Sequence record: PP355766.1
Length of the DNA: 64,000 nucleotides
Strand: one strand, 5' to 3'
Part shown: piece by piece, positions 8,599 through 40,037 of the stretch
Layout: each line of letters opens with the position of its first letter
How positions within the stretch are numbered: position 1 is the stretch's first letter
Program-made: the position numbers and the translations under genes
Notes under the pieces: generated by a model
What the model was told of the DNA's origin: nothing
Database searches by the model: none
What the model saw: only the letters and a program-made list of their open reading frames with translations

Positions 8599-9209
8599 AG
8601 ACTTTCTCTCAGAACTAGGTTAACCCCGTCGTATACACCATCAACTGTGATCTCTTCGCTGAATGAATCTCCGTTCATTAATTTAGTTTGGAAAAGAATC
8701 CCATTGAAACGTGGTCTCTCGGAGCCGTTGGTAGTGAGCAACAGATCAGGGTATAGATTAAGTGTCCATACTCCTGCTACGTTTTTAAAAGATGTAATCT
8801 TATACACCTTTGGATGTGTGGTTAACTGGAATAAATCACCAGGCTTGGGCTCTCCAGATAGGGAGCTCGTATTGGTAATAACCAGTGTGGAGCCTTTTTG
8901 TCCAGCGGCAATGCGACAGTTGTTCGCATCCCCTCTCACTCGGTAAGACTCATAGTGTGGGAGTATAACGTCGAGATAGCCTCTGGTACGCTTATACTCT
9001 AGAATTGCTGACGAAAGTACAGCATACTCATCGGGAAACATCACAGGATAACTAATGTTAAGACCCCAATACTGAGTGGCTGTTTTAACTTCGTTAACCT
9101 TGCCGTTTGGTAGCTCATCTCTGATCATCGGATCGTTATCGATCAGAGTAGCTTTATCAAACCCAAGGCCGTTATACTGAGGATGTGTAAAGGGATCTGG
9201 TAATCTCAT
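8595..9209 (-). CDS. pb9: Distal tail protein (Dit)
   Basis: 204 aa starting MRLPDP; T5 pb9 size and synteny. Confidence 0.92.
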   Translation of the reverse strand: MRLPDPFTHPQYNGLGFDKATLIDNDPMIRDELPNGKVNEVKTATQYWGLNISYPVMFPDEYAVLSSAILEYKRTRGYLDVILPHYESYRVRGDANNCRIAAGQKGSTLVITNTSSLSGEPKPGDLFQLTTHPKVYKITSFKNVAGVWTLNLYPDLLLTTNGSERPRFNGILFQTKLMNGDSFSEEITVDGVYDGVNLVLRESL

Positions 9210-9236
9210 GTTTTGTTTTCTCCTCTCAATGTTAAT

Positions 9237-9265
9237 ATTATAGTCATATCAAGAAAAATTTTCAA
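9237..9265 (-). promoter_or_regulatory. sigma70-type promoter for pb9-pb3-pb4
   Basis: TTGAAA-N17-TATAAT. Confidence 0.75.
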
Positions 9266-9290
9266 GATAATTTTATAAATTCCAAAAAGA

Positions 9291-9314
9291 AGGGAGGACA
9301 ATTACGTCCTCCCT
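9291..9314 (-). terminator. Intrinsic terminator after pb2
   Basis: AGGGAGGAC/GTCCTCCCT stem plus T-tract on the minus strand. Confidence 0.8.
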
Positions 9315-9323
9315 TTAGTTTAG

Positions 9324-12300
9324 TTAATTCAGGTTCTTTAAGCTCAGCCCTTGTTCATTCAAGGCTAACTCTACAGCTGCCTGGAATGCCGCAGGATTTT
9401 CCAATGCGTACTCCATAAAGCTCTTAGCGTCCATTGCCTGGATGTTCAGATTAACCGGTCTTCTAGCACCACCAGAAGAAGTTTCGGAAGCCACTTTATC
9501 CGCTGGAGTTACCTTGGTAGGCACCATAGGAGTTGCAACTTCCGTTCCATGTTCACCCATCTTATAGGAGACACCTGGGTAGGTATTACCACCTTCTGCA
9601 CGAGGGATAAATCCGTTAGCACTACCTATGCCTTTATCACCGCGAACGTAAGATAGTTCACCTGCGTTTGCACCCATGCTAACGTCTACGTTTTTCTGGC
9701 GCTCACCTAAGGTTAGGTAAGAGGCGGTTTCACCACCAGATCCTGCTATATCGGTCATTCCGGTAGCACTAGATGCCTGAGCTAGAGATAAAGCACCTGC
9801 AAGCCCAGCCGCGATCATCAGAGGAATAGAGAACGGATACGGAACAGCTGTTGCTGCCTGCATTACCGCTACTGCTGTCTGGATAATGATTTGCTTCTTA
9901 GCAGATTCCTGCTGAAGTTTAATCTTCTCCGCTTCCATCTTTTTGATCTTGTTCTTAGACTGCTCAGATTTACCATCACGCTTCTGCTCTGCCGCGATAG
10001 CTGCATCGATTGCCGAAATCTGCTGGTTAGTACCGTAGCTAATCATCTGGCTGACTGTCTGCATACCTGCTGCAATCATGGACGTAGTATCTAGAGATCC
10101 TTGAGAGAACTGGATCATAGCGTTAGCTAAGTTCCCCATACTTTGAGCAGTAGCAGTAGCCTCTGAGTTTAGCTGAGAGAGCTTACTGATAGCCGTGTCG
10201 TATGATGCCATCTGGTTTTCCATATCGGCAAATTTCTTGTCCTCTCCTTCCAGACCAGTAGTAGGCGTATAGTCTGCGCCCAACGACTGTCCTACACGAT
10301 CCATCATCTGTGCGTTACGCTGAGCTTTGAGTGCTGCCATTTGAGCAACGGTATTTGCAATCTCACGACTCCAACGTGCCTGCTCATCAGCGTTACCTTT
10401 CGTGAATTCCTTCATTTCCTGGTAGAACGCTAACTGCTCCTGCATTTTCTGCGATTCGCCCATTAGAGGCTTCATGCTTTGATTGCGCTCAAATTCCTCT
10501 TTACGCATCTCGGCAGTTTTAGCGTTACGATCAAGCTGCTCTTTCCAGATCTCCCGTTCAATCGAAGCAATGTTACGTCTAGACTGTTCAGCTTCCTTCT
10601 CTTTATCAGCCTGAGTCTTCAGCAGAGCTAGTCTATCTTTCTCTACCTGTAGATTTAGTTTAAGGCTCGCCACGTTATACTGGGAATCTGTCATAGTACG
10701 GTTAGAGAGTAGGGCTATCTCCCTGTCAATACCAACTATCTTATCCTTGTAGAACTTCTCCTTCTTAGTAGATTCCATGCCCTGGTTTTTAATCTTGAAC
10801 TCTTCTGTTTCGAGAATAGTTAGTTCCTTTTGTAGGGCTTTGTTGTCCTTATTCGTAGCCAGTACTGCCTGCAGAGCAGCTTTCTTGGACTGGAGCTGTT
10901 GTAGCTCTAGTGCTCTACCTGCTTCTTCCGCCTTATCCTTATTACGAGTAGATGCGTAAACATCTGCTATACGTTTTTCCACTTCCAGCTTAGATTTGGC
11001 TTCGTCCCCCGCAATCTTCTGGTAGTTGGTCATAGCCTTGTAAGCGGTGTTCATTTCCGTTACAGAAGAGTACCCAAGATTCAGATCCTTAGTTAACTGG
11101 TTAGCTTTTTCAGTAGAGCCTCCCGCCAGGGCTTCCACTGCCTTAAGAGCATCCCCCAGGGCTGCTGTGGCCTTAGCCGCCGTATTAGAATCCTGTGCGA
11201 AGTTTTGGATATCATTACCCAAGTCTCCAGCAGTTTTCTTAATATTGTTGTACTCTTTGTTTATGGCAACTGCCCCACCTAGAGCATCTTTGTTGAAGGT
11301 GTAAATCCCGTCACTTGCTTCGACGTTCTGCGATATATTAAGCTGATTAGCTAGGTTAGGGTTTCCTTTCTGCGTTTTAGCTAGTGCAGTGTCTCTAGCG
11401 TCTCTCCACTTCTGGATGGCCCCAGATGAATCCTCTAGTTCCTGCTGCAACTTATATGCTTCTCGTCGCATATCCGCAGTTTCTTGAGTGAACCTCTTGT
11501 TAGCCTCGGAGGCCCCTAGAGTGAAGGAGTTTCCTAGACCCTGGTAGTTGGCACTCACGGCAATCTTAGTAGCCATGTCCATCTTAGATTCGCGCTCTAA
11601 GATATCCTTATTAAGGGCTGCAAGTCTCTTGCTGGCTTCTTCCTTAGCCTTTATAGCGTCATCCAATCCTTTCTGAGATGCTTCGAGGTTCATCACCACG
11701 GCGTTGTTATCTTTAACATCCATCTTGCCGATTGATTCCTTCTGAGCTTCTGCTGCTGCTGAGGAAATAGAGGCCTTAGAGGAATAAAACGCTGCGTTTA
11801 TAGACGCAATAACAGGTCCGAGATACTTAGCTGCTGCCTGCTGAACCTTACGTAATGCAGAGTCTGCGTTCGCAGCAAACTGTTCCCAAGGAGTAGCACG
11901 CAGTGCATCATCAAGATATCCGAAACGCTTAGTAGATTCTGCTACAACTGCGTTTGCATACGCTTGCTGTTTCTGGAACGAGGATAGACTCTGTATGTTA
12001 TAAGTCATACCCGTGTTAGCTGCGTTTAGTTGTTTAACATGTTCGGCGAATGCGTCATTCAGACGGATGGTTACACCCAGTTCGTCCAGAAGTTCGATTT
12101 CCTGCTTAGACACACCCTTGATTACACGGTTGAGTGCATCTGTCATGTCAACACCTAGAGTGGCTGCGGCTCTACGTGCAACTAGAGCAAACTCACCAAT
12201 CTGTTTAGAATCGAAACCATATGCGGCCGCAGTAGACGCCTGGCGCATAGCCTCTTCAAAGGATACAGCATAACCAGTAGCTTCCTGCAGTGCGATTGCT

Positions 12301-27927: not shown

Positions 27928-28090
27928 TGGCCTAAGTTTGCCTAATTACTCCCTTTAGCCTTTTCTCCAAATTTCATAAAGTTACACATGGAGGTGGGCT
28001 TAGAGGGTCGGGGGGTGGTATGGTAGTCCGATTACCCCCCTAGCTAACTATTAGTACCCTAACTATTTCGCTAGGGTACTATTAGCTTTC

Positions 28091-28813
28091 TTATGATGCG
28101 ATGGCTAATGATTGAATGAATTGTTGAGGCTTGACGCCATAATCATTTCTTTCCTCTTCGGTCATACCTTCCCAGCAATGAGCTAAACGCTCGCAAAGAT
28201 ATTGATAATCATTATCATCATCAAGCGCCTCATCTATGAATGACTCACCAGCAAGGCGCACACCAATAGACAGAATGTCATTGATTGCGGTAGCGTCCAT
28301 CGTTTGAAGGCCAGCAGCAGCAGCAGCGGCTAACACTCCTTTGTTATCGTCAATCATAGTGATCGTGGCATTCGGGTATTCAGCTTTAAGCATTTCGAAA
28401 TAATGCGTTTTATAGATACCATCTTTTGCATAGTACACCGATTTATAATCGGCATCACCAATATAGCGATGTAATACATCGCGGGACAAGATCTGGATAT
28501 TGCCACCGCGCCCCGCCCTGATACGTTGTTTCCGTAGGAAATAGTAATCACTTTTTCCCATATAGCGAGCGGTAACAATAATGTTTAATACAGTGGGATC
28601 ATTAAGCGATGCCCGCATATATTCAACCAGCGGTAAAAGAGTGTCGGTCATAATTGCATCATGTACGCAAGCCTTTTCCCGGTACATGTTTAAATCTAAG
28701 TTCCCTTTATCATCCATACACGGGAACACGCGGGCAAAGGAATTAATAACGGTGCCGTCTAAATCCCATAACTTGATTGTCTTGATTGCCAGTTTATTAA
28801 AAGCCATTTTCAT
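28091..28813 (-). CDS. dmp: Deoxynucleoside-5'-monophosphatase (pre-early)
   Basis: HAD motif WDLDGT, later IDDN; first FST gene as in T5. Confidence 0.92.
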   Translation of the reverse strand: MKMAFNKLAIKTIKLWDLDGTVINSFARVFPCMDDKGNLDLNMYREKACVHDAIMTDTLLPLVEYMRASLNDPTVLNIIVTARYMGKSDYYFLRKQRIRAGRGGNIQILSRDVLHRYIGDADYKSVYYAKDGIYKTHYFEMLKAEYPNATITMIDDNKGVLAAAAAAGLQTMDATAINDILSIGVRLAGESFIDEALDDDNDYQYLCERLAHCWEGMTEEERNDYGVKPQQFIQSLAIAS

Positions 28814-28879
28814 TTCTCCGGTTTCGGGGTTGTTGGTAATTAATCAAGCGAGCTATATTATAACTCGCTTTGTTAATTA

Positions 28880-29332
28880 TCAGAAGAATAAAGTTAAGGC
28901 ATCGGCTAATTCAGCCGGTTTAATCCGGGTAGCCAGCACCGGGACGATTGCGAGGGGCGGGGTGTATTCGCTTTCCCCGTAGTTCATCACGTCGCCGAGT
29001 AAATAGGTATCATCATAATCATTTTCGCTTACGACGATAAACATAAGGCCAGCGGCTACCGCGTCAATCTCCACGGTTTCGCAAATATCAGCCTCATAAA
29101 GAATCGAATCAGCGGCTACCAGTTGGGAGATAATGCCCGACTCTTTAAAATCAGCGGGGCGCGGGAGAATATCGGTCACGGCTTTTAATACAGTGGCGCC
29201 GTCAACGGTAATGATTTTTTGATAGCTAACATGCGGGCGCCCTTCGCTATCGCGGGTAATAACCAGACTGTTTTCTACGACGTTGGACGCGGTGAAAGAT
29301 TTACGGTTGTTATAGATGAAAGTAAGTTTCAT
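28880..29332 (-). CDS. Pre-early hypothetical protein
   Basis: 150 aa; CTGGAG RBS; between dmp and A1. Confidence 0.8.
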   Translation of the reverse strand: MKLTFIYNNRKSFTASNVVENSLVITRDSEGRPHVSYQKIITVDGATVLKAVTDILPRPADFKESGIISQLVAADSILYEADICETVEIDAVAAGLMFIVVSENDYDDTYLLGDVMNYGESEYTPPLAIVPVLATRIKPAELADALTLFF

Positions 29333-29395
29333 TTGTTTCTCCAGCTTATTTATTTAGGGGGTTATTTATTGCCGGGATATTCTCCCGGCTTTTTA

Positions 29396-31078
29396 TTATG
29401 CAAAGAAAGCGCCGTCTTTAAAGTCAATCAAAGTACGCTGCCCGTTTTCATAGGTGATAAGATGAGTCTGTGACCAGCTAGACGCGCCAATGTTGTAGCC
29501 CATATCGAGGGAACCAGCGACGCCAGCAGTATAAACGCCACCGTAAATGCTAGGGGTATGCGTATGGCCAGTGTTCATCTTGCCGAGCTTGCGGAAGCCT
29601 TTCGGATTGCCGCGAGCGCCGTTAATGCCGTTGTGACCGTGGGAACCGCATTCGATGCCCGCGATTTTCATCGATTCGTCTGTAGTTAAGAAGATCGCAG
29701 CAAAATCGCAGCCAGCAACATTGCGCAGGGCATAATCCAGCACGTTAAAAGTATCGTCCTTGTTTTCGATTGCCTCATAAATCGCGGCATTCAGACGATA
29801 GTAAAGATGGGCGTTTGCCGGGTCTTGTTGAATGTTAGCTTTGCTATCATCCAGCCAGCGAGAAAGCGCTAGATCGTGGTTGGATTCAACAATGACCGTT
29901 TGACTAAATTCACGCTCCATTTGCTCCAGTACGCGGCCCGTATCAATCAGGTCGTCAATTACCTTGTCACGTCCGGCGGCGTACTGTTTCGCAAGGAAAA
30001 CACCACTAGCGCGGTTATGATGGTTGCGTGACGTGAAATCATGCACATCATGCACAATCTGGTAACGAGGGCGCAGGATATCCACTAGCGCGGTTTCGCT
30101 AGGGTTATATTCCCAGCTTGCCGCCGCGACAGCGTGATCCAGCTTTTCGGCGTGAATGTCACCATATTGCAGCGCGGCAACGTGGCCCGTTACTTCTTCG
30201 CCACCGTTAACCGTAAATTTATGGTTAAGATCGTAAAACATCCCGCTTTCGTCCATCGTTTCGATTTGGCGAGCAAAGAAGTTGCCGCTATCGTCGATCT
30301 CTACCAGCAAAGCGCCGTAGTTATGCAGCGCTTCGGCCTTTTGGCCCGCTTTTTGCTGAATATAATTTTTCAGCGTTGCCGTACCAGTTGAGTACATACG
30401 GCGCACAGTGTCGCCCTTCATTGCCGGGACACTTTCGGCGGTGATTTTAGCGTGACCGATAGCCAGTCCTTTCAGGCCGTAGGCGGTCGCAGTCTCGCCA
30501 AAGCCGGACAGCGGAAAATCAGCAGTAGGCAGAATGTTAATTTCCGCCATGAATGCAAAGCCTGTTTCACGGTTGCCCAAAAACACGTTTTCATCACAAA
30601 TGAAATCTGAGAAAGCATCATCATATTTCAGTTCATCGTTGCCCTGCCCGTTTTGGAAGCCTTTTTTGTTGTAGGCGTATTTGCTTACTAACAGAGTAGC
30701 ACCGAGATATTTCGCGGCCTCCTGTAAGGTTTTCCAGAAATTAGCATGAGGGAACGTATTGTTTTGAATCGAAGTCAAAAGAAAACGGCGGCCCGGAATT
30801 ACCTTCCAGCTTTCGACGCTGGAGTTAAGCTGACCAGCGGCAACGGGGCGGGAATCTTCCACCGCAACACGTTGGGCGCGTTTTTCAGCAGCAGGTTTAA
30901 CAGGCTTGTTATTATCCAGCCAATCGCAAATTTCGCTAGAATGTTTCGCCGTCCCGTAATGCTCTTTGCTCAATTCGTCGCAGATCTCCAGCTTTTTAGC
31001 GCGCAGACGTTTACCCCAAAAGTTGAGGTTATTTGCAGCGGTTAAAATAGCTTTCTGTTTCTCGATTGCAATGATCAT
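29396..31078 (-). CDS. A1: A1 protein (DNA transfer / host DNA degradation; metallophosphoesterase-like)
   Basis: 560 aa; motifs GDIHAE, HDVHD, ESNHD, SHGH, GHTH; matches recalled T5 A1. Confidence 0.93.
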   Translation of the reverse strand: MIIAIEKQKAILTAANNLNFWGKRLRAKKLEICDELSKEHYGTAKHSSEICDWLDNNKPVKPAAEKRAQRVAVEDSRPVAAGQLNSSVESWKVIPGRRFLLTSIQNNTFPHANFWKTLQEAAKYLGATLLVSKYAYNKKGFQNGQGNDELKYDDAFSDFICDENVFLGNRETGFAFMAEINILPTADFPLSGFGETATAYGLKGLAIGHAKITAESVPAMKGDTVRRMYSTGTATLKNYIQQKAGQKAEALHNYGALLVEIDDSGNFFARQIETMDESGMFYDLNHKFTVNGGEEVTGHVAALQYGDIHAEKLDHAVAAASWEYNPSETALVDILRPRYQIVHDVHDFTSRNHHNRASGVFLAKQYAAGRDKVIDDLIDTGRVLEQMEREFSQTVIVESNHDLALSRWLDDSKANIQQDPANAHLYYRLNAAIYEAIENKDDTFNVLDYALRNVAGCDFAAIFLTTDESMKIAGIECGSHGHNGINGARGNPKGFRKLGKMNTGHTHTPSIYGGVYTAGVAGSLDMGYNIGASSWSQTHLITYENGQRTLIDFKDGAFFA

Positions 31079-31161
31079 TATCTAAATTCTCCAGTTAATG
31101 GGATATAGGCAGAATTGCCAAATATAACGCCTTGTTGCTGGTGGCGTTATAATTTGCGACT

Positions 31162-31389
31162 CTAAACTATTGCCGGAATAATACTGGCGGATATTCCAAA
31201 AGCTACCGCTAGAATAATAAAGATTATTGACCAGCGGCGGCAAATACTCGCTTTCTTGAACCAGAAGTCACGGCGTAATAAATCCGTTTGTTCGCTGCCT
31301 ATTTCCATGAAGTTATAGTATCCATAGAGACAAGCGGCGGCGAAAAAGCCAGCGATAAGAATTAAGGATTCAGTAGGGAAAAAGATCAT
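31162..31389 (-). CDS. Pre-early membrane protein
   Basis: 75 aa with two hydrophobic helices; between A1 and A2 as in T5. Confidence 0.75.
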   Translation of the reverse strand: MIFFPTESLILIAGFFAAACLYGYYNFMEIGSEQTDLLRRDFWFKKASICRRWSIIFIILAVAFGISASIIPAIV

Positions 31390-31655
31390 TTTACAACCTC
31401 CTTTTCTTCTACGCTGAAAGCGTAGTTAAGAAGGTAAATTTCGCGGGAAGATAATTCCAGCATTTCCGGCTTAAATACTTCGCGGTTAATAGCCATACCG
31501 TAAGTATCCGCATCAGGGTTAACCCACAAAACAATATATTCAGGTACTTTAACGCTTGGGGGCGTCATAACCTTATTATCCTGATAACCCGTCTGGATTA
31601 ATTCATCCACGACGGTTCCCGTTAATTTAATAACGGCACCTTTAATTAAAGCCAT
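31386..31655 (-). CDS. Pre-early hypothetical protein
   Basis: ATG at 31655 with CTGGAG RBS. Confidence 0.75.
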   Translation of the reverse strand: MALIKGAVIKLTGTVVDELIQTGYQDNKVMTPPSVKVPEYIVLWVNPDADTYGMAINREVFKPEMLELSSREIYLLNYAFSVEEKEVVK

Positions 31656-31722
31656 TTTTATTTCTCCAGTTATGGGGGACAAAATATTTAATTATGCGCC
31701 CCGCTAGGGAGGCGCATTATAA

Positions 31723-32127
31723 TTATTCTGCCGATTCTTTTACTTCGTCCTGAACGCCAACCATACGGGCGATAACGTCCAGTTGGTCGAGCTTCATTTG
31801 TTCCAGACTTGCCAAACCATCGGCATCATCAATCAGGCCGTCAGCAATGGCGTGCTGAGTGAGAACGCGCACATAGTGAGCTTTACGCAGGGAGGAACCG
31901 CCGCCGACTTTGCGCGGCTTATCGGACTTCTGATAAACCTTTGCGCTAACCAGTTTAGAGCGCACTTTAACATGCGATTCAGCACCGACAGCCTTTGCAA
32001 TATCGATAAGACCTTGCGAGTTGGCTACCTCCAGACCATCGGATGCAATAATGCCTTCATACATAGAAATGGCAGTAGCGGCGTTGGCTTCGTTCCATGC
32101 GAATTTTTCGGTTTTAGTAGCAGTCAT
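31723..32127 (-). CDS. A2: A2 protein (second-step transfer, DNA-binding)
   Basis: KFAWNE…VRSKL.SAK.YQKSDKPRKVGGGSS.RKAHYVRV matches recalled T5 A2. Confidence 0.95.
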   Translation of the reverse strand: MTATKTEKFAWNEANAATAISMYEGIIASDGLEVANSQGLIDIAKAVGAESHVKVRSKLVSAKVYQKSDKPRKVGGGSSLRKAHYVRVLTQHAIADGLIDDADGLASLEQMKLDQLDVIARMVGVQDEVKESAE

Positions 32128-32425
32128 GATATATCTCCAGTTTTATTTAAGGGTTTAGAATAACTAGAATGTTATTCCTAATAAGCTGTTAATAATAGCG
32201 GTTAACCTCATCACCGTAATATTCCGGCACTATCGTTAAAAGTATTATACAGCTTATTCAGAAAACACTTTAAAGCTATTTCTTTCAAAATATATTAGCG
32301 CATTATTCGTCGCTTTATTTTGCCGCTCTTAATTGCCGCGGTAGCATGATATGTACCGTCGAAAGGATATATTATAAATATACCGAATCGCCGGGTGAGG
32401 CGGTTTAATTAATACCATTTAGCCG

Positions 32426-32686
32426 TTAAGCGACGGCTAACCATTTATCATCTTTGCGAATGACTTTCACCACGTCGCCGGAATCTACCCGGACGCTGTA
32501 AATCTTCGCATCGCTGTTTTTTGCTTTTTCCGTTTCGGCGTATACCGCATTAATTTTATCAAACGGGATCATCGCCGCCCCTTTGATATATCCGATTTTT
32601 TCGTTTTCGCCCGGCTTACTTACGTCGCCAGTAACGAAAGGAATAAAAACGGAATCACCGATCATTGGGGTTTTAACGTTTTGCAT
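32426..32686 (-). CDS. Pre-early hypothetical protein
   Basis: 86 aa; CTGGAG RBS; own promoter. Confidence 0.8.
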   Translation of the reverse strand: MQNVKTPMIGDSVFIPFVTGDVSKPGENEKIGYIKGAAMIPFDKINAVYAETEKAKNSDAKIYSVRVDSGDVVKVIRKDDKWLAVA

Positions 32687-32827
32687 GTTTCTTACTCCAG
32701 TTTAGTTTATTGGGTTATCCGGTTAACACTCTGATATTCTAGAGCGTTAACAGAAAACTCAATTACCCTTACTGAGAGAATCGACTTTTCCAGATTTTTA
32801 AAGAGCGGTGTTGCTTATTGAGATTCT

Positions 32828-32856
32828 ATAATAAAGCGTTATCGGCAGACTGTCAA
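32828..32856 (-). promoter_or_regulatory. Pre-early promoter
   Basis: TTGACA-N17-TATTAT. Confidence 0.8.
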
Positions 32857-33041
32857 GCGTTATTTTGTAAAGATTTTAAATAACGCATCATGTTATCCCA
32901 AATCATCGGCAAGCCTTGCTGACCTCCGCGCTGGTAAGAGCGGTAACGCCGCGCCATATCGCGTTGCATTTTGACCAGTTCCGAACTTGCCATTTTGTTC
33001 AATTTTGCTGCCGGTTTAGATGATATTACAAAGCGTTTCAT
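32853..33041 (-). CDS. Pre-early basic microprotein (62 aa)
   Basis: AAAGGT RBS; follows the 55-aa ORF. Confidence 0.65.
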   Translation of the reverse strand: MKRFVISSKPAAKLNKMASSELVKMQRDMARRYRSYQRGGQQGLPMIWDNMMRYLKSLQNNA

Positions 33042-33056
33042 GTTGTCAACCTTTAA

Positions 33057-33224
33057 TTAGTGGAGTGTATGATTTCGTTTAGTTTGCATAATGATTTGGC
33101 CGTCTTTATGAATGAAGGCTAAATCTACGTCGTACACGTTTGAGTAAGTCTCTATAAAGTGTTCGGCGTCTGCTACTGTAAACTCGTTTACAATCTCGCT
33201 ACTCATTACGTTTTCTTTTAACAT
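33057..33224 (-). CDS. Pre-early microprotein (55 aa, MLKENVMSSEIVNEF…)
   Basis: Hand-translated; TAAGGA RBS; below the ORF-track cutoff. Confidence 0.6.
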   Translation of the reverse strand: MLKENVMSSEIVNEFTVADAEHFIETYSNVYDVDLAFIHKDGQIIMQTKRNHTLH

Positions 33225-33296
33225 GTTTTCGGTTTCCTTATAAAGTAAAGAAGCCGATAACGCTTTTTATAGAATCCCAAATTGTTAAAGAGCAGT

Positions 33297-33423
33297 GTAG
33301 GGCGGGGACAGACTATCTTGTTTCGGCGTTTCCTTTCGCGGTAGTCGGGGCAATGTTGCCGCCTCCAGATACCTAACTACTAGTGAAACGCTTTCGTGTT
33401 TCCGTTTCGTCTTGCCGCCCTAC
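33297..33423 (-). ncRNA. Candidate structured pre-early RNA or leader
   Basis: 9-bp closing helix GTAGGGCGG/CCGCCCTAC, internal hairpins, six GAAA motifs, promoter directly upstream. Confidence 0.55.
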
Positions 33424-33430
33424 GAGATAA

Positions 33431-33458
33431 ATAATAACACAATGACGTTTAGCCGCAA
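33431..33458 (-). promoter_or_regulatory. Pre-early promoter
   Basis: TTGCGG-N16-TATTAT. Confidence 0.55.
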
Positions 33459-33818
33459 GCGGAGAATTGTAAAGAAGCGTAAAGAGAAAATGACCCTCAC
33501 CATGAATAGGAAACGCGCACACGTTGCACAGCTATTAAAGAAAGTCAACGAATATTTTTACTATTTTTCTTCAAAAGGGGTTGACAAAACCTATTTCACA
33601 CGAGGTGAGGAGATCGCCACATACCCGGTATGATTCATCGGCTTTTATCTAAAACCGCTTAGAATCGATTCTAGAGCGTTTTAGACCCTGTTAATAACTT
33701 ATACAAAAAGCAAAAATGAAATTTAATTAGTTATCCACTAGACAAATGATTATTTCTATGAAAACGCAAAAATAATGCTTGCGTTTATTTTATGCTGCAC
33801 TCCTGTTTTCCGGGCAAG

Positions 33819-33916
33819 TTATCCACAGCACAAAATAACTTGACAAGCTGAGAAGCGGTATAACGAGATATCCCCAGACTTATCCACAGGTTATCCTACT
33901 GTATATTTATACAGTA
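33819..33916. promoter_or_regulatory. DnaA boxes plus LexA (SOS) box, left copy
   Basis: TTATCCACA at 33819-33827 and 33880-33888; TACTGTATATTTATACAGTA at 33897-33916. Confidence 0.8.
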
Positions 33917-34030
33917 TATTCCGGCAGCGGTAATACTCTAATATGCCCCTAGAACGCTCTATAACGCATTCTAAGCGCTTTAAATTTAGAGGCCATATTA
34001 AAGGCCGTTGCTAGAGGGCGCGGAAAAATA

Positions 34031-34059
34031 AAAAGCCCGCTCATTATAAGCAGGCTTTT
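34031..34059. terminator. Bidirectional-type terminator ending the 34-37 kb operon
   Basis: AAAAGCC…GGCTTTT stem with A and T tails. Confidence 0.7.
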
Positions 34060-34073
34060 AATTCGTTAGCTAA

Positions 34074-34316
34074 CTATTCCGTATAGGTAATGTTATCATG
34101 GTCAGTAAATGAAAACGGCGTTTCATCCGTACTCCATTCATCCCATAACTTAGCAGACTCATGATTTCGCAGTTTAGCAATAGCAGGCAAAATACTAGCT
34201 TGCTCATTATTAACAATAGGGGCGGCTAACTTTGCATACTCCTCCGGGGTTAATTCCACCTCATAGGTGAGATTAGTAACCCTTTGCGTACTAACTAATA
34301 CACGTATCTTTTCCAT
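34074..34316 (-). CDS. Pre-early hypothetical protein
   Basis: 80 aa; coupled to the upstream gene (TAATG). Confidence 0.7.
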   Translation of the reverse strand: MEKIRVLVSTQRVTNLTYEVELTPEEYAKLAAPIVNNEQASILPAIAKLRNHESAKLWDEWSTDETPFSFTDHDNITYTE

Positions 34317-34663
34317 TATCGAAATACCGTTTCAATTGTTTCGCCGCTAGAGCAGACTGACCCGCCGCGATAAAACAGGCGTTCGGTTTTATATTTGGTT
34401 AGCAGATCATAGAGATCCAGATCATCGGAAAGCGGGTAAGATTCCCCCAGCGCGGAAACGGAAACAGGTTTACCCGCCACCAGATCACGGCAAATCAGAA
34501 TCAGCAAAGGCCAGCTAATATTGATAGCATCGCCCCGCAACCCAATTTTGAGGGTAGCCACTTCGTCAATATGCCTTGCATTCTGGCGGCTAACGTATTG
34601 GATAACGGTTTCCATCGTTTTATAGTGAGCCAGAAAATATTTGTTGACATAGATGTAAATCAT
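34316..34663 (-). CDS. Pre-early hypothetical protein
   Basis: 115 aa; ATGA overlap. Confidence 0.75.
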   Translation of the reverse strand: MIYIYVNKYFLAHYKTMETVIQYVSRQNARHIDEVATLKIGLRGDAINISWPLLILICRDLVAGKPVSVSALGESYPLSDDLDLYDLLTKYKTERLFYRGGSVCSSGETIETVFR

Positions 34664-35187
34664 AGGTATACGACCCCGCTAACCTTCCAACCGGATTTTA
34701 AACCTTCCTCAATATGAAGGATAGTTTCAGCATCCGGGATATAGATAAACGTTTTCAATTCGCGCAGATTAATAACTGCCTTTCCGTCAGCTATCTGGAT
34801 GTAACCCAAATAGATTGCCCGCTCTAGAACGGAATGAAGGGGCGAACCACCATTAACGAGGTTGCAGGAATGACCGGGCCAGTACATATAAAACGACCCT
34901 TCTACCCCAGCATTACAGTATTTTTCGTCGCCGTCGTCTTCTTCCCAATCATCCTCGCCTAACATACTTTCGGCATGTTCGCAAGCCTTTTCCCAGGAAA
35001 GGGAATCGACGTCAATTCCACGACCTAAAAAATGAAGGTCAGTCCAGGACGTACCGCAAACGTTAGTATCACATTTGAGGACGGCGGCGACTTCCTGAGA
35101 TTCAATTAGCCCGCCCTCTAAATATAAACCTTCTTCCGCTTCTACCGTACAATTAATGCCCGGTACGCAAGATTTCACATGAAACAT
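34660..35187 (-). CDS. Pre-early acidic hypothetical protein
   Basis: 175 aa; CTGGAG RBS. Confidence 0.8.
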   Translation of the reverse strand: MFHVKSCVPGINCTVEAEEGLYLEGGLIESQEVAAVLKCDTNVCGTSWTDLHFLGRGIDVDSLSWEKACEHAESMLGEDDWEEDDGDEKYCNAGVEGSFYMYWPGHSCNLVNGGSPLHSVLERAIYLGYIQIADGKAVINLRELKTFIYIPDAETILHIEEGLKSGWKVSGVVYL

Positions 35188-35238
35188 GGTTTTCTCCAGT
35201 AATGGGGGCGGCTAGAGATTTAGCCGCCGGGAGGGATA

Positions 35239-35733
35239 TTACAGCTTATCGCGGAAAGTATCAAGCCGGTTGTTTAGCTCTTTAATCGCGTCGGCATGGA
35301 TTTCGTCATACGTTGACACGATATCCGCCAGCTCATCCATAGTTAGCGAACTAACAATAACGGACGTTTTCACCTCCAGCTTTTCCGGCTCCGGTTCCGC
35401 TGGTGGCGTATCCAAAAACGTTAGCGAGCCTAAGCTAACAAGGTATACTTCCATTTCAGTCGCGCCGTTTTCGCAATCGATTTCAAAGGTACTATCGCCA
35501 ATACAGATATCAAAGCCATAGCCATATACCCCGATAATCCGCAAGGGGATTCCCAGCATATCATCGGTGTCCGGGTAGCAGTCCCGGCGGTCAATCTGGC
35601 GAGCCAGATTATCTAAATTTTTAGGCTCAACGAAAATAGCATTTTTGCCACGATCGCCATTATCACGCAGGTGATGCCAGATATCGGCAAGCGTCATCTT
35701 TTTACCTTCAAAAGTAGCGGTTAACCGTTCCAT
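35239..35733 (-). CDS. Pre-early hypothetical protein
   Basis: 164 aa; CTGGAG RBS. Confidence 0.8.
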   Translation of the reverse strand: MERLTATFEGKKMTLADIWHHLRDNGDRGKNAIFVEPKNLDNLARQIDRRDCYPDTDDMLGIPLRIIGVYGYGFDICIGDSTFEIDCENGATEMEVYLVSLGSLTFLDTPPAEPEPEKLEVKTSVIVSSLTMDELADIVSTYDEIHADAIKELNNRLDTFRDKL

Positions 35734-35798
35734 AACGTTCTCCAGTTAGTTAGCAGGGTAATTATTATAGCGCCCCATTATAGAGGCGCTAGATATAA

Positions 35799-36764
35799 TT
35801 ATTCTGCTACGTCGTTTTCAATCAGGCTAGAAAGATTGACGCCTTTCAATACTTCGTCAATCATTTCGCCTACATTGAAACTTTGTACCAGTTCAAGCAT
35901 AGCGGCTTGCATTGCAGCATCCGCCGCGATCACCGCTTTGCGGTTGTTCGGCGCGTACTGGCTAACCGCGAAGTTCAGCAGGTTAGCAATTACCACACGG
36001 CCTACGGCGGTGTCAACATAACCGCGAACCATAAACGGCGCTTTGCTGGCGGCGATGCCGGAAACTTTTTTCAGGACGATGGAACCAGCTTCCAGTTTAG
36101 CAGCATTTACAGCAGCGTTTTTGTTAGCGGCAACGATAGCGGTAGCGGTAGATTTGATAGTATTCATTTGTAATGCTCCAGTCTCAAAATTATTAGGGTT
36201 AACTACATTTTCAGTAACAGCCGGGGCGACTTCTTCTAGCTCGCCATCATAACGATAATTTCCAGTCCTTGCCCCTTCTTCGATATCAATATCGTAAGGG
36301 TCACATGGTAACAGGATACTCCCGTCCTTGTCAAGCACAAAAATCATCATTTCGCTAGAAATGCGTGCTGGTGGTAGTTCCAGATGATCGCACAGATTTT
36401 TAACCCATGCGCGGGCATCGGTGAAAGCAAGCAGTTCGCTTTCATGGTAGCAAAAACGTCTCGACGCTTGCTTACCCTCGGACGCCTTATACAAATAAGC
36501 GTCCGTAGTGGTAGATACTATCAGATCAATAGGCTGGCTGTCAACCAAATATTGATCATCGTGATAAATAACAATCGCCGCGCCGGGGTTGGCTAGAACG
36601 TAGTCACGGCAACGCTCAAAGGCATAGCCGGATCTACTTTCCATATTTGCGCGATAAACGGCCAAAATATGACCAATAGAGGCGCACTTACTGCCGTCTA
36701 ACAGGTTGCGAGCGCCACCGCGAACCATCGGCAAATTAGCAACGGGGGTAAATTTCTGTAACAT
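35799..36764 (-). CDS. Pre-early protein with Ala-rich C-terminal domain and a probable internal start
   Basis: 321 aa; AAGGAG RBS; second CTGGAG-N8-ATG at 36167. Confidence 0.85.
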   Translation of the reverse strand: MLQKFTPVANLPMVRGGARNLLDGSKCASIGHILAVYRANMESRSGYAFERCRDYVLANPGAAIVIYHDDQYLVDSQPIDLIVSTTTDAYLYKASEGKQASRRFCYHESELLAFTDARAWVKNLCDHLELPPARISSEMMIFVLDKDGSILLPCDPYDIDIEEGARTGNYRYDGELEEVAPAVTENVVNPNNFETGALQMNTIKSTATAIVAANKNAAVNAAKLEAGSIVLKKVSGIAASKAPFMVRGYVDTAVGRVVIANLLNFAVSQYAPNNRKAVIAADAAMQAAMLELVQSFNVGEMIDEVLKGVNLSSLIENDVAE

Positions 36765-36796
36765 CTTCTGTTACTCCTTTGTTTGGCTGAGAATCT

Positions 36797-36826
36797 ATTA
36801 TAGCAAGATTCCCAGCTTTTTAGCAA
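36797..36826 (-). promoter_or_regulatory. Pre-early promoter
   Basis: TTGCTA-N18-TATAAT. Confidence 0.7.
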
Positions 36827-36836
36827 TCATTATTTT

Positions 36837-37175
36837 CTAGAAGCAGATACCACGGCCCCGGCCTACCTCATCCCGATTCTCATCGAAAATGATCACGTTG
36901 GCATTGAACGTGCTACGGTTAACGATCATCTGTATTCCGTCCTTGCCCGGTTCCGGTTCCACCATGAATCCCCAAGTGCCGGAGTCAACCGCCACGGAAT
37001 CAAAATCCTGATTCCGTAACACTGCCGTAACAGTACCCTCCTTTGCAAAGGTCACACTGACACGGCATTCAATAGGCCGTACTTTTTCAGGGGTAACGAT
37101 AGCCGGGGCGCTAACCTCCGCAAGTGCAGCACCTGAAAGCATAGCAAGGCCAAAGCCAACAATAGCGAGTCTCAT
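36837..37175 (-). CDS. Pre-early exported protein (signal-peptide-like N-terminus)
   Basis: MRLAIVGFGLAMLSGAALA-E; CTGGAG RBS before ATG 37175. Confidence 0.75.
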   Translation of the reverse strand: MRLAIVGFGLAMLSGAALAEVSAPAIVTPEKVRPIECRVSVTFAKEGTVTAVLRNQDFDSVAVDSGTWGFMVEPEPGKDGIQMIVNRSTFNANVIIFDENRDEVGRGRGICF

Positions 37176-37218
37176 AACATTCTCCAGTTTTTGGGGTTGT
37201 TCCCGTTCAAGAGATCGC

Positions 37219-37291
37219 ATTATGGCGGAATCGGATTTGCTTGTCTACTACTAAAAATAGTAGTTGCTTCCTGCTAGAGTTATGTTATTAT
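37219..37291. promoter_or_regulatory. Divergent promoter pair
   Basis: Minus strand TAGACA-N17-CATAAT (37219-37247); plus strand TTGCTT-N16-TATTAT (37264-37291). Confidence 0.65.
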
Positions 37292-37319
37292 TATGACTCC
37301 AAACAAAGGAGATCGAAAA

Positions 37320-37433
37320 ATGGCTTTTTCAATGTTGGCGCTCGGTTTAGTCGGTTCTATGATGGTTTTGGGCTTTATCGCTTTTTGCGGCTATGCCCTC
37401 TATGATACTTTGTTTAATAAGGAGGCTTTTTAA
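37320..37433 (+). CDS. Membrane microprotein (37 aa)
   Basis: AAAGGAG RBS; single hydrophobic helix; hand-translated. Confidence 0.7.
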   Translation: MAFSMLALGLVGSMMVLGFIAFCGYALYDTLFNKEAF

Positions 37434-37603
37434 TGAGAACTTTGCGCGGTGGTAGTCCCAAAAGCCGTAGCCACAATACTTACCAGTTGAACGTTATTCG
37501 TGATGGTCAGAAGAAAGGCGGTGACGGTGGCGGCGGTGAGTGGGGTTTTCGTGTCATCATGGTTATTATTATGACCCTAGTCTTTTTGCAGAGCTGCCAA
37601 TAA
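37433..37603 (+). CDS. Membrane microprotein (56 aa, C-terminal TM)
   Basis: TAATG coupling; AAGGAGG RBS inside the upstream ORF. Confidence 0.7.
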   Translation: MRTLRGGSPKSRSHNTYQLNVIRDGQKKGGDGGGGEWGFRVIMVIIMTLVFLQSCQ

Positions 37604-37713
37604 TGAGCGGCCTAATGTTTTTGGGCGTGATAGTTATTAGCGCAATCCTTACCCTGCTAATAGTTTCAGTTGTAAACCACTTTTGGCCTGAGTGTTTCCA
37701 CGGCGATATGTAA
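37603..37713 (+). CDS. Membrane microprotein (36 aa)
   Basis: TAATG coupling; single hydrophobic helix. Confidence 0.65.
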   Translation: MSGLMFLGVIVISAILTLLIVSVVNHFWPECFHGDM

Positions 37714-37835
37714 GAGTGTCGCCGCCCTCCTCCACCGCGTGACCCCTTACTAAAATACCTACCCCAAAATTAAATCGCTCACAGCGCGTTCTAGAGCGCT
37801 TAAAATCGATATCAGCAGATAGTGTTGTCGGGAAA

Positions 37836-37945
37836 TACTGTATAAATATACAGTAGGATAACCTGTTGATAAGTCTGTTGATAACTCGCTACCGATCGAT
37901 TGAGGCGTCAAGCTAATTTACAATTTTGTATAACTCTGGGGATAA
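37836..37945. promoter_or_regulatory. LexA box plus DnaA-like boxes, right (inverted) copy
   Basis: TACTGTATAAATATACAGTA at 37836-37855; TGTTGATAA at 37864 and 37876; TGGGGATAA at 37937. Confidence 0.8.
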
Positions 37946-37977
37946 CTTAAATGATAGTGTTTCTCACTTCCTTTTCG

Positions 37978-38074
37978 AAATGCGAATCGTTCGCATTCGC
38001 ATTCAGCTCGGTAAACGCAAATCATTCTCATTCGCATTCAACTTCTCAAATGCGAATCATTCTCATTCGTATTT
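37978..38074. repeat. Three 27-bp direct repeats with exact 35-bp period (injection-stop-signal region)
   Basis: AAATGCGAATCGTTCGCATTCGCATTC-like copies at 37978, 38013 and 38048. Confidence 0.85.
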
Positions 38075-38105
38075 GCATTTCCGACCCCCGGCCCTTCCTG
38101 CGCTT

Positions 38106-38665
38106 ATGTGCGAATCCGACAATTTGTCAAGCAAAATATTACGTGAGGCTGCTAGGGTATGTGCAAATCCGATGAAAATTTATTTTTACCGCCCTGGGGG
38201 CATGTGCAAATCCGATACTAATATGTGCGTATCCGATAATAATTTTTAGGGGGAAGGCGCGCAGGTTGCTGCGGCGCAGCGGTGGGCGCGAGTCTGGGTG
38301 AGTATGTGCAAATCCGACGGGTATTTTTGAGGGCGGGATAAACGGGGTTAATTGGGGCAATTCGGGAATGATGGGGGCAAGGGGGCAGATAAGGGAAAAT
38401 ATTATGAGTTAAATGGGGGTAAAGGGGTTGACACAGAAAAAATTCCTGTGGCTCTAAAAAACAAGCGAACTCACGGTGACACACCGTGTAAAAAGGCTTG
38501 AAATTTCAGGAGATATTTTATATTCGCAGAATCGAAGATTTTGATCCACAGCTACCGTTTGCTAGTATATATGTGCATATCCGACAAGCGTTTGAGTATG
38601 TGCAAATCCGATGATGATTTTTATATGTGCATATCCGACATAGCTAGAGGTTAGTGCAAATCCGA
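38106..38665. repeat. Nine copies of ATGTGC(A/G)(A/T)ATCCGA
   Basis: Starts at 38106, 38159, 38202, 38223, 38304, 38571, 38598, 38625 and 38653 (last copy partial). Confidence 0.9.
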
Positions 38666-38674
38666 TGATATTTT

Positions 38675-38816
38675 GTGACGCTTAGGACTTAGGCGAATGA
38701 TGTGAGTTTGTGTGAAACTTCGTGAGGACTTTGTGGAGTGACGCTTAGGACTTGGGAGAATAGCGAGGTAGCTAGAATTTGGTGTGAGGACTTCGTGAGA
38801 TGTGTGGAACTTCGTG
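38675..38816. repeat. G/T-rich short repeats
   Basis: GTGACGCTTAGGACTT x2 (38675, 38738); ACTTCGTG x3 (38717, 38790, 38809). Confidence 0.8.
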
Positions 38817-39065
38817 GAATTGTGTGAGTTTCTGGGCAGCTAGCGGGTAGTTTTTGGGTTGGAAAATAACCGCCCTCCCCTTAGGTGTGTAGAAAGAACC
38901 GCCCTGTATAGAAAGATGACTAGAGTTCAACCCTAGAGCCGCGAAACGATGGTGTGTAAGGATTGCCTACTTTTAAACGTGAGTAATCGTGAGTTCATTC
39001 CCACGTTTCCTTTGTTTTCTTTATTGTGTCTTTTATTTTAGTTATAGATCCCCCTATTTCTCCCG

Positions 39066-39177
39066 ATGTAGCCGTGCTAGGCATCGCAGATTGTATCGTA
39101 TGGCTGGTCACTCTTTGTACTCGCTTCGGAACTCCGCGCTACTAAAGTTAGCCATGATAATCTGTGCCTAGCTACAT
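39066..39177 (-). ncRNA. Candidate rod-like hairpin RNA (or DNA cruciform)
   Basis: Nested helices ATGTAGC/GCTACAT, TAGGCA/TGCCTA, CAGATT/AATCTG, ATGGCT/AGCCAT, CTTT/AAAG; promoter upstream; no long ORF. Confidence 0.6.
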
Positions 39178-39209
39178 AAATTTATGAATTGTATGTAATC
39201 TATGAGATT

Positions 39210-39239
39210 ATTATAACACGTGCACAAAATAACTGTCAA
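39210..39239 (-). promoter_or_regulatory. Promoter firing toward the injection-stop zone
   Basis: TTGACA-N18-TATAAT, downstream of the terminator at 39268-39292. Confidence 0.7.
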
Positions 39240-39267
39240 GAACATTTTGTAAGAGTTTGAAAAAGTG

Positions 39268-39292
39268 ACAGGGACTTGGCGAGAGTCCCTGT
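39268..39292 (-). terminator. Terminator ending the early operon
   Basis: ACAGGGACT/AGTCCCTGT stem plus nearby T-tract. Confidence 0.75.
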
Positions 39293-39299
39293 GATTAGC

Positions 39300-40037
39300 T
39301 TAGAGTTGATCTTTCCTTATGAATCTACCTTGGCTTAACATTGCGATGTACAATGCTTCCGGGGAAGTCTCTAGGTGGTCTAACTCTTTAATGTCGAACG
39401 AACCTTTTGGTAACTCGCCAGGCTCGTCATGATCATATAAATACTCGACAGCATCTCCTAGCATGAGAGCATTCCCGATCTTCTTGATCTTCGAGTATCT
39501 CTCTTTTACTAATGCTATTAACGCTAAATCCTCTTTGGTTAAGTTTAACTGTCTAGAGAGTTTAACTGTCGTCTTCGTTATCTGTACAGCAATATCCAGA
39601 ACTGAGGCTTGGTAATCTTTCCAGTCCTCAACCTTTTGAGCGTCACGTTGAAGATGTGGAAAATCGATATAGTCCTGGCATTTTCCATCAGGAATATGGT
39701 AACTGGGGAAGTCTTCTACTGCCTGTTGCCACGTAACTGTCTTCACCTTATCATGCGGATATGGCTCATCCATTATAACGTGGAAGGAGTTGGCCATGAA
39801 TTTCTTCTCAGTAACCGGATACATCTTGTGAACTTTATTCAAGTCCACGTAACCAGGAGCTAACGTTGTTTTCTTAGCATCCTTAGAATAAACAGGCTTG
39901 CCATTCTTCATCTCCGCTGGTCTTAGCTCCCCCGCTATTAGTACCGCGGATTTTTCCTCAAACGTTAGCTCTGAGAAGTTTTTACCTTTGGACTCCTTGG
40001 CTAGGGTGAATATAGTCTTCAGCTTCTCTAGATTCAT
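39300..40037 (-). CDS. Early hypothetical protein
   Basis: 245 aa; coupled operon. Confidence 0.8.
   Translation of the reverse strand: MNLEKLKTIFTLAKESKGKNFSELTFEEKSAVLIAGELRPAEMKNGKPVYSKDAKKTTLAPGYVDLNKVHKMYPVTEKKFMANSFHVIMDEPYPHDKVKTVTWQQAVEDFPSYHIPDGKCQDYIDFPHLQRDAQKVEDWKDYQASVLDIAVQITKTTVKLSRQLNLTKEDLALIALVKERYSKIKKIGNALMLGDAVEYLYDHDEPGELPKGSFDIKELDHLETSPEALYIAMLSQGRFIRKDQL

Follow-up and report, generated by a model that had tools for sequence, protein, structure and literature searches.

The window analysed in this study, a 64,000-nucleotide stretch of sequence record PP355766.1, belongs to a T5-like Klebsiella phage of the Sugarland group. We found that an inverted element in this window, which encloses a block of pre-early genes, carries in each of its two copies a 20-bp palindrome that differs by one base from the consensus site of the host SOS repressor LexA, next to an array of DnaA boxes. 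The element is the form that the T5 repeats IRC-spacer-IRD (Repeat Region 2) and IRD'-spacer-IRC' (Repeat Region 3) take in the Sugarland lineage. We propose that it probably serves as an accessory module, conserved across the family, at which host LexA and DnaA bind next to the injection-stop region. Repeat and DnaA boxes alike have already been described in T5, and the LexA reading of the palindrome, which is known there as palindrome D, looks unreported.

The inverted repeat and its boxes

An earlier note on this DNA had described a 42-bp element in two copies (33875-33916 and 37836-37877), each of which is the reverse complement of the other except for one base. We obtained the same result, and the mismatch (C versus A) lies within a DnaA box. 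In addition, the repeat could be enlarged to arms of 66 nt with 88% identity, which are separated by 3,899 nt (Table 1), and a weaker similarity of the arms goes on for about 95 nt further inward. By alignment, the full distal element reaches about position 37963, where GAAACACT is found.

The 20-mer of each copy matches the LexA consensus TACTGTATATATATACAGTA (as quoted in PMC8072944) at 19 of 20 positions, so the claim that both are one base away from the SOS consensus was correct. Each 20-mer forms the inner, block-facing end of its arm, beside phased DnaA boxes. Furthermore, these two boxes are the only CTGT-N8-ACAG sites in the 64-kb window, and no further copy of the palindrome was found there even when up to three mismatches were allowed. 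In simulated sequences, only 0.04 sites per 64 kb are expected to reach at least 16 of 20 matches to the LexA consensus, and thus a 19/20 match by chance is very unlikely.

As a hairpin, the palindrome folds weakly (-4.7 to -4.9 kcal/mol, z about -1.4). A hairpin or cruciform role was dismissed for this reason, and the weak fold favours a protein-binding site over a structural role. The Rfam scan of 33000-39300 returned just sub-threshold, terminator-like chance matches.

DnaA boxes were found at 33731, 33819 and 33880 on the plus strand and at 37864, 37876 and 37937 on the minus strand, and all the positions at which DnaA-like boxes had been listed before were confirmed. Among 23 boxes with at most one mismatch, six cluster at the two elements within some 380 bp, with orientations mirrored between the copies, while about 0.1 would be expected by chance. 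Several TTATNCACA-type 9-mers are grouped here in the same orientation, as would be predicted for a DnaA-box cluster, and within each copy they follow one another at intervals of 11-12 bp. The last DnaA-type box of the left array, TTATCCTAC, overlaps the left LexA-like box. In the right arm, the pair reads TTATCAACA-GAC-TTATCAACA, and this 3-bp pairing agrees with the description of the T5 boxes by Davison (preprint).

The counterpart in T5

In the T5 annotation of Wang, inverted repeats C and D occupy 6022-6152, D' and C' occupy 9332-9462, and a 20-bp "palindrome D" is given at 9330-9349. We found that T5 palindrome D is TACTGTATAAATATACAGTA, the same 20-mer as the right box of the window. 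In addition, the CTGT-N8-ACAG sites of T5 are located at 6137-6152 within IRD and at 9332-9347 within palindrome D. According to the preprint of Davison, the T5 repeats are 131 bp long and contain eight DnaA boxes in pairs 3 bp apart with a constant 52-bp spacer, the distance between the repeat copies is variable (about 1.8-4.3 kb), and membrane-bound DnaA could act as the injection stop. Neither LexA nor SOS appears in the text of that preprint.

An ungapped anchored comparison showed a common order of parts: GAAACACT, a DnaA pair, TTGAC, a second DnaA pair, a third DnaA-like 9-mer that shares bases with the palindrome, and the palindrome itself. This order and the same overall length were found in copies from Klebsiella, Escherichia, Salmonella and Serratia phages. 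In the distal copy of the window, GAAACACT starts at the same offset as in the T5, Salmonella-phage and Serratia-phage copies, and the proximal copy is without the GAAACACT end. Thus, all the characters of the T5-type Repeat Regions 2 and 3 were found in the window: inverted copies at the same position in the terminal repeat, DnaA pairs, homology and length including the distance from GAAACACT to the palindrome, a variable coding block between the copies, and a distal copy placed left of the injection-stop direct repeats. However, there are differences from T5. Besides the missing GAAACACT end of the proximal copy, the enclosed operon of the window is inverted relative to A1, the gap between the copies is 3.9 kb instead of 3.2 kb, and the distal box lies about 250 bp from the terminal-repeat end instead of about 800 bp.

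The earlier note had placed the element in the injection-stop and pre-early region of a T5-type genome, which holds; as a structure, however, it is not new, since the inverted repeat with DnaA boxes is known from T5, a link that the note did not make. Besides Wang in 2005, Heusterspreute in 1987 and Davison in 2015 and 2020 are said to have described the T5 repeats. In the searchable literature, including the stop-signal work of 2020-2026, we found nothing that ties T5-like phages to LexA or SOS boxes; the Davison review of 2015 and the 1987 paper were outside the reach of this search.

The sequence of the window is that of the first 64 kb of Klebsiella phage vB_Kpn_AM_K4, without any difference, and its identity to Sugarland-type phages (Demerecviridae) is about 94-96%. 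The Sugarland terminal repeat (1-10138; 10,138 bp) corresponds to about 27966-38103 of the window and contains the inverted element. In the Sugarland layout, the region of the element is 3' of dmp, A1 and A2. This position downstream of the three genes within the terminal repeat indicates that the region belongs to the first-step-transfer (pre-early) DNA. Beyond the distal element, on its right, direct repeats of 35 nt (37978-38082) and ATGTGCAAATCCGA-type repeats (38103-38674) straddle the predicted terminal-repeat end, as the DRC and DRD repeats do in T5. These arrays are the counterpart of the DR repeats of the T5 injection-stop region.

With regard to the record itself, PP355766.1 is 288,685 bp long and classified in GenBank as Straboviridae. 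Its first ~110 kb are T5-like of the Sugarland type, and 120000-150000 is T4-like (e.g. gyrB). The record looks like two unrelated phage genomes fused into one.

Conservation of the palindrome

The palindrome was present in 39 of the 40 T5-like loci from IMG/VR, and 31 of them had two exact copies. No other CTGT-N8-ACAG site occurred in these loci, which are 13-22 kb each. In GenBank, the 50-nt core was found at 1,219 places in 548 phage records. Furthermore, the palindrome is kept in Serratia phage Kamaji, Proteus phage Stubb and three Vibrio lineages, whose A1 proteins are 33-58% identical to that of the window; the null expectation in such distant relatives is 0.02-0.06 sites per locus.

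A conservation footprint was computed over 61 non-redundant palindrome copies. The most conserved positions were CTGT and ACAG (1.89-1.95 of 2 bits), followed by the central eight bases (1.62-1.75), the flank on the DnaA side (about 1.5) and the inner flank (1.13-1.26). Within the palindrome, the two central bases vary most, and the palindrome as a whole is conserved more strongly than the adjoining DnaA boxes. Such a footprint is of the kind that LexA recognition would predict. Across the family, the boxes are under strong purifying selection.

The box centre (33905-33908 and 37844-37847 in the window) is either AA or TT, and phages differ in how it is oriented with respect to the DnaA side. 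This flipping suggests a symmetric function, as for the site of a dimer, and not a -10 element. The point bears on the idea that each copy is a weak inward sigma-70 promoter, with the -35 element in the DnaA box and the -10 element in the LexA box, from which a short transcript repressed by SOS and DnaA would run to a nearby terminator or motif. The promoter scan gave TTATCA-16-TATATT at 37872-37845 on the minus strand, the left side has an equivalent TTATCC-16-TATATT, and terminator-like hairpins occur 130-240 nt inward. However, the right one, the only promoter-like match overlapping the box, is weak at 9/12, and the left one scores 8/12. In addition, the flipped centre would destroy the supposed -10 element in many phages, and the downstream sequence contains no Rfam family and no conserved small open reading frame (ORF). 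We consider this idea highly unlikely.

In the Vibrio T5-like phages, we also found an additional copy of the palindrome (L046, 10944-10988; L047, 4253-4297; L048, 10834-10880). In two of these three phages, it is followed by TGGCAC-N5-TTGCT, an exact element of the sigma-54 -24/-12 type. At the corresponding position, the enterobacterial relatives have TTGACA and no clear -10 element.

A putative platform for LexA and DnaA

We predict with fair confidence, from the match to the consensus and the footprint, that LexA binds the palindrome. In the reading that we prefer, each copy would be a cis-acting platform for host proteins, and the two copies would flank the variable half of the first-step-transfer DNA. 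On the block side, the DnaA array would end in the 20-bp palindrome, which would serve as a near-consensus LexA operator. On arrival of the DNA in an uninduced cell, LexA (as a dimer) and DnaA (as an oligomer) might occupy these sites and form an accessory, non-essential modulator adjoining the injection-stop region. The LexA part could make this complex sensitive to the SOS state of the host, for example when A1 begins to destroy the host DNA.

The complex would not regulate the block promoter in the manner of a classical operator. In published T5 work, promoter P11 functioned in vivo as a pre-early promoter. Its core (TTGCCT-17-TATCAT) is about 200 bp downstream of the box, and the predicted block promoter of the window (37247-37219) is about 590 bp from the distal box. 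An SOS operator would be expected to overlap or adjoin the SOS-inducible promoter that it controls, and at this distance of 200-590 bp the role of a classical operator was rejected. Meanwhile, the left box is located downstream of the minus-strand terminator at 34059-34031. The earlier note had used that position to argue against simple repression, and both the position and the argument proved right.

Several observations weigh against this reading. First, a perfect consensus centre, which is the single-step intermediate between the AA and TT states, was found in none of the 61 unique copies, and its absence is not explained by LexA binding alone. Second, the proximal box has decayed in several loci, to ACAA, ACAT or CCAG. 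Third, with 200-590 bp between the box and the block promoter (mapped in T5, predicted in the window), no regulated target emerges. Fourth, the proximal copy can be deleted in T5, as mutant deltaL-deltaR has lost Repeat Region 2 completely, and with it the proximal box and P11, while Repeat Region 3 and its palindrome D remain. Finally, a conserved phage protein could be the binder, since A2 has an invariant helix-turn-helix-like segment, IAKxVGAxSxxSVRSKL, from Klebsiella to Vibrio phages.

The last point raises the question of whether a pre-early protein of the phage could use the palindrome as its operator or cleavage site, for example an A2 dimer or an A1/A2 complex, with its likeness to a LexA site being incidental or a case of mimicry. 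A2 is annotated in PHROGs as a DNA-binding protein, and its N-terminal three-helix bundle is modelled with good confidence, within a whole model of moderate confidence (predicted local distance difference test, pLDDT, 76). In addition, Davison proposed the palindromes of the region as targets of A1/A2 in a restriction-site model. However, the 19/20 match to LexA speaks against coincidence, as calculated above. The A2 model has no significant structural match, LexA included (best Foldseek E = 2.1), and no sequence match in the PDB. Furthermore, A2 is essential and the proximal box is not. We regard this explanation as unlikely.

The element and DNA entry

The proposal of the earlier note went further: LexA and DnaA, bound at both copies, would produce the injection stop by clamping or looping the DNA injected first, and cleavage of LexA after the damage caused by A1 would release the second-step transfer or the enclosed genes. 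The setting fits this proposal in part. The distal copy lies directly to the left of the injection-stop repeats, and in T5 the calculated shear point is about 270-290 bp to its right; conservation of the boxes is strong; A1 by itself is enough to degrade host DNA; and the mechanism of second-step transfer is not yet established.

However, several observations weigh against it. A T5 mutant in which hegG through gene 017 is deleted (deltaL-deltaR) is viable and forms small plaques (2026 preprint). By mapping the published primers onto the T5 sequence, we found that the deletion covers 5393-9081, so that the entire proximal copy is gone. Some T5-like phages are naturally without the proximal repeat and have kept the distal copy (Davison). 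In addition, P11, the promoter between the copies, already works as a pre-early promoter, and the box is 200 bp away from it. Phage ESCO40 has both boxes intact, and its listed host is E. coli DH5a. This host is recA1, and LexA cleavage is impossible there. Moreover, LexA is not known to link sites that lie far apart.

Thus, the proximal copy is dispensable, and the element need not occur as a pair. The viability of deltaL-deltaR, the natural loss or decay of the proximal copy and the recA1 host of ESCO40 weigh against an essential clamp released by SOS, and a clamp of this kind is improbable to us. Of the earlier account, the near-consensus LexA boxes beside DnaA boxes, the purifying selection and the T5-type injection-stop and pre-early location stand, and the essential mechanism with A1-induced SOS as its cue is unsupported. 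The alternative given there, titration of LexA or DnaA, was rejected as implausible, since each injected DNA brings just two LexA sites. Because the proximal copy is dispensable and a recA1 host is listed, any role of the element is likely to be modulatory, in line with the accessory platform for LexA and DnaA that we prefer.

The enclosed block and its inversion

The block between the copies contains the gene of a DUF7566 protein, which is homologous to T5 gene 011 and to genes of ESCO40, Kamaji and Stubb. According to a 2026 preprint, T5 gene 011 is toxic, disturbs the nucleoid and could not be cloned in its native form. In all non-Sugarland loci with a DUF7566 gene, this gene is oriented away from A1, with about 270 bp between it and the proximal box. 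In contrast, in the Sugarland-type loci, the window among them, it is oriented towards A1 and is closer to the distal box. The order of p175 within the operon is unchanged. In addition, the proximal inner flank of the window finds its best match at the distal side of T5 and ESCO40, in their inner flank. Relative to Tequintavirus/Epseptimavirus, Kamaji and Stubb, the Sugarland lineage carries the block in inverted orientation, which is a new finding, and the inverted block together with the swapped inner flank indicates that the repeats mediated at least one inversion.

A programmed invertible segment of the Hin/Gin/Cin type was rejected. Domain searches found no recombinase domain among the block proteins, and the orientation of the block is fixed per lineage, with one orientation in all Sugarland-type loci and the opposite one in all others.

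The inversion could also suggest that the repeats are mainly recombination substrates or the relic of a mobile element, used for inversion or cassette exchange, and that the binding motifs are incidental. The content of the block is indeed highly variable, and the Sugarland orientation differs from that of every other lineage examined. However, there is a single genus-level inversion among about 45 loci, purifying selection peaks exactly on CTGT, ACAG and the DnaA boxes, and phages that have lost the proximal copy retain the distal one. Since the block encodes no recombinase either, this explanation has very little probability in our opinion.

The features of the region are listed in Table 1. 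A quasi-palindromic motif (CTAAAACCGCTTAGAATCGATTCTAGAGCGTTTTAG, 26-38 nt) is kept from Vibrio to Klebsiella phages, always near the palindrome. It also occurs as IRB/IRB' in T5 and at 9236-10472 of the Vibrio-phage locus L046. The hairpin predicted for this motif is a good one (-9.9 kcal/mol, z = -3.95), and Sugarland has a terminator annotated at one of the copies.

Table 1. Positions in the window of the inverted element, its predicted binding sites and the neighbouring features
Feature	Position	Strand	Basis and remarks
Left, A1-proximal arm	33861-33926		Repeat search and alignment with T5 and other genera; counterpart of T5 IRD, Repeat Region 2
Right, distal arm	37826-37891		Repeat search and alignment; counterpart of T5 IRD', Repeat Region 3
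Left LexA-like box TACTGTATATTTATACAGTA	33897-33916		19/20 to consensus TACTGTATATATATACAGTA
Right LexA-like box TACTGTATAAATATACAGTA	37836-37855		19/20 to consensus TACTGTATATATATACAGTA; identical to T5 palindrome D
Phased DnaA-type boxes ATATCCCCA-GAC-TTATCCACA-GG-TTATCCTAC	33868-33899	+	Direct reading; spacing as in Davison
DnaA boxes TTATCCACT (33731) and TTATCCACA (33819), either side of a hairpin	33731-33827	+	Box scan
DnaA-type boxes TTATCAACA (37864 and 37876) and TTATCCCCA (37937)	37864-37945	-	Box scan
Quasi-palindromic motif TCTAAAACCGCTTAGAATCGATTCTAGAGCGTTTTAGA, T5 IRB type	33648-33685; more copies at 33949-33996 and 37772-37801		Repeat search, family comparison, folding
Pre-early operon, six ORFs without assigned function	34074-37220	-	ORF list, Sugarland annotation, homology and domain searches
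DUF7566 protein, homologue of T5 gene 011	35799-36764	-	Homology and domain searches
p175	34660-35187	-	ORF within the block operon
Two small membrane-type ORFs inside the block, without assigned function	37293-37603	+	ORF list, Sugarland annotation
Predicted sigma-70 promoter, TAGACA-17-CATAAT	37219-37247	-	Promoter scan; positional equivalent of T5 P11
Intrinsic terminator ending the block operon	34031-34059	-	Terminator scan; annotated in Sugarland
Direct-repeat arrays	37978-38674	+	Repeat families D1-D4; right of the distal element; T5 annotation for the counterpart

Comparison with other known systems

The palindrome resembles the LexA operators of enterobacterial SOS genes, colicin operons and temperate phages in its CTGT-N8-ACAG core, AT-rich spacer, TA flanks and 19/20 match to the consensus. 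However, it does not lie over a recognisable promoter, and it belongs to an obligately lytic phage, in which it forms a mirror pair fused to DnaA arrays. The DnaA boxes resemble oriC-type arrays, since same-orientation 9-mers lie 2-3 bp apart on one helix face and consensus sites are mixed with one-mismatch sites. However, the element is not at a replication origin. A DnaA box beside a LexA site is also found at the ends of Tn5/IS50 and in the uvrB control region, and in Tn5 the two stand at inverted ends with the DnaA box outermost. Compared with those ends, the element described here has no transposase, its sites are far closer to the consensus, and it is conserved across a whole virus family. 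The replication origins of T5 map near the genome centre (Davison).

Implications for T5-like phages

The stop and restart of DNA entry in T5-like phages was still called "poorly understood" in 2026. Published models invoke only repeats, palindromes and DnaA boxes, and the LexA-like palindrome adds a second, easily tested host factor together with the exact bases at which mutations could be placed. In addition, the lineage-specific inversion shows that the repeats can rearrange the pre-early cassette. It is also conceivable, though rather unlikely, that the phage uses the host SOS repressor as a sensor of the infection stage: LexA would sit at palindrome D beside a DnaA filament, near the injection-stop site, and be removed when RecA becomes active through the destruction of host DNA by A1. 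Just as tentatively, its removal might tune the restart of transfer, the shut-off of pre-early transcription or the read-through into the stop region. If this is true, T5-like phages would be the first strictly virulent phages known to have built LexA into their programme of DNA entry, and the problem of two-step injection, now 50 years old, would gain a testable host factor.

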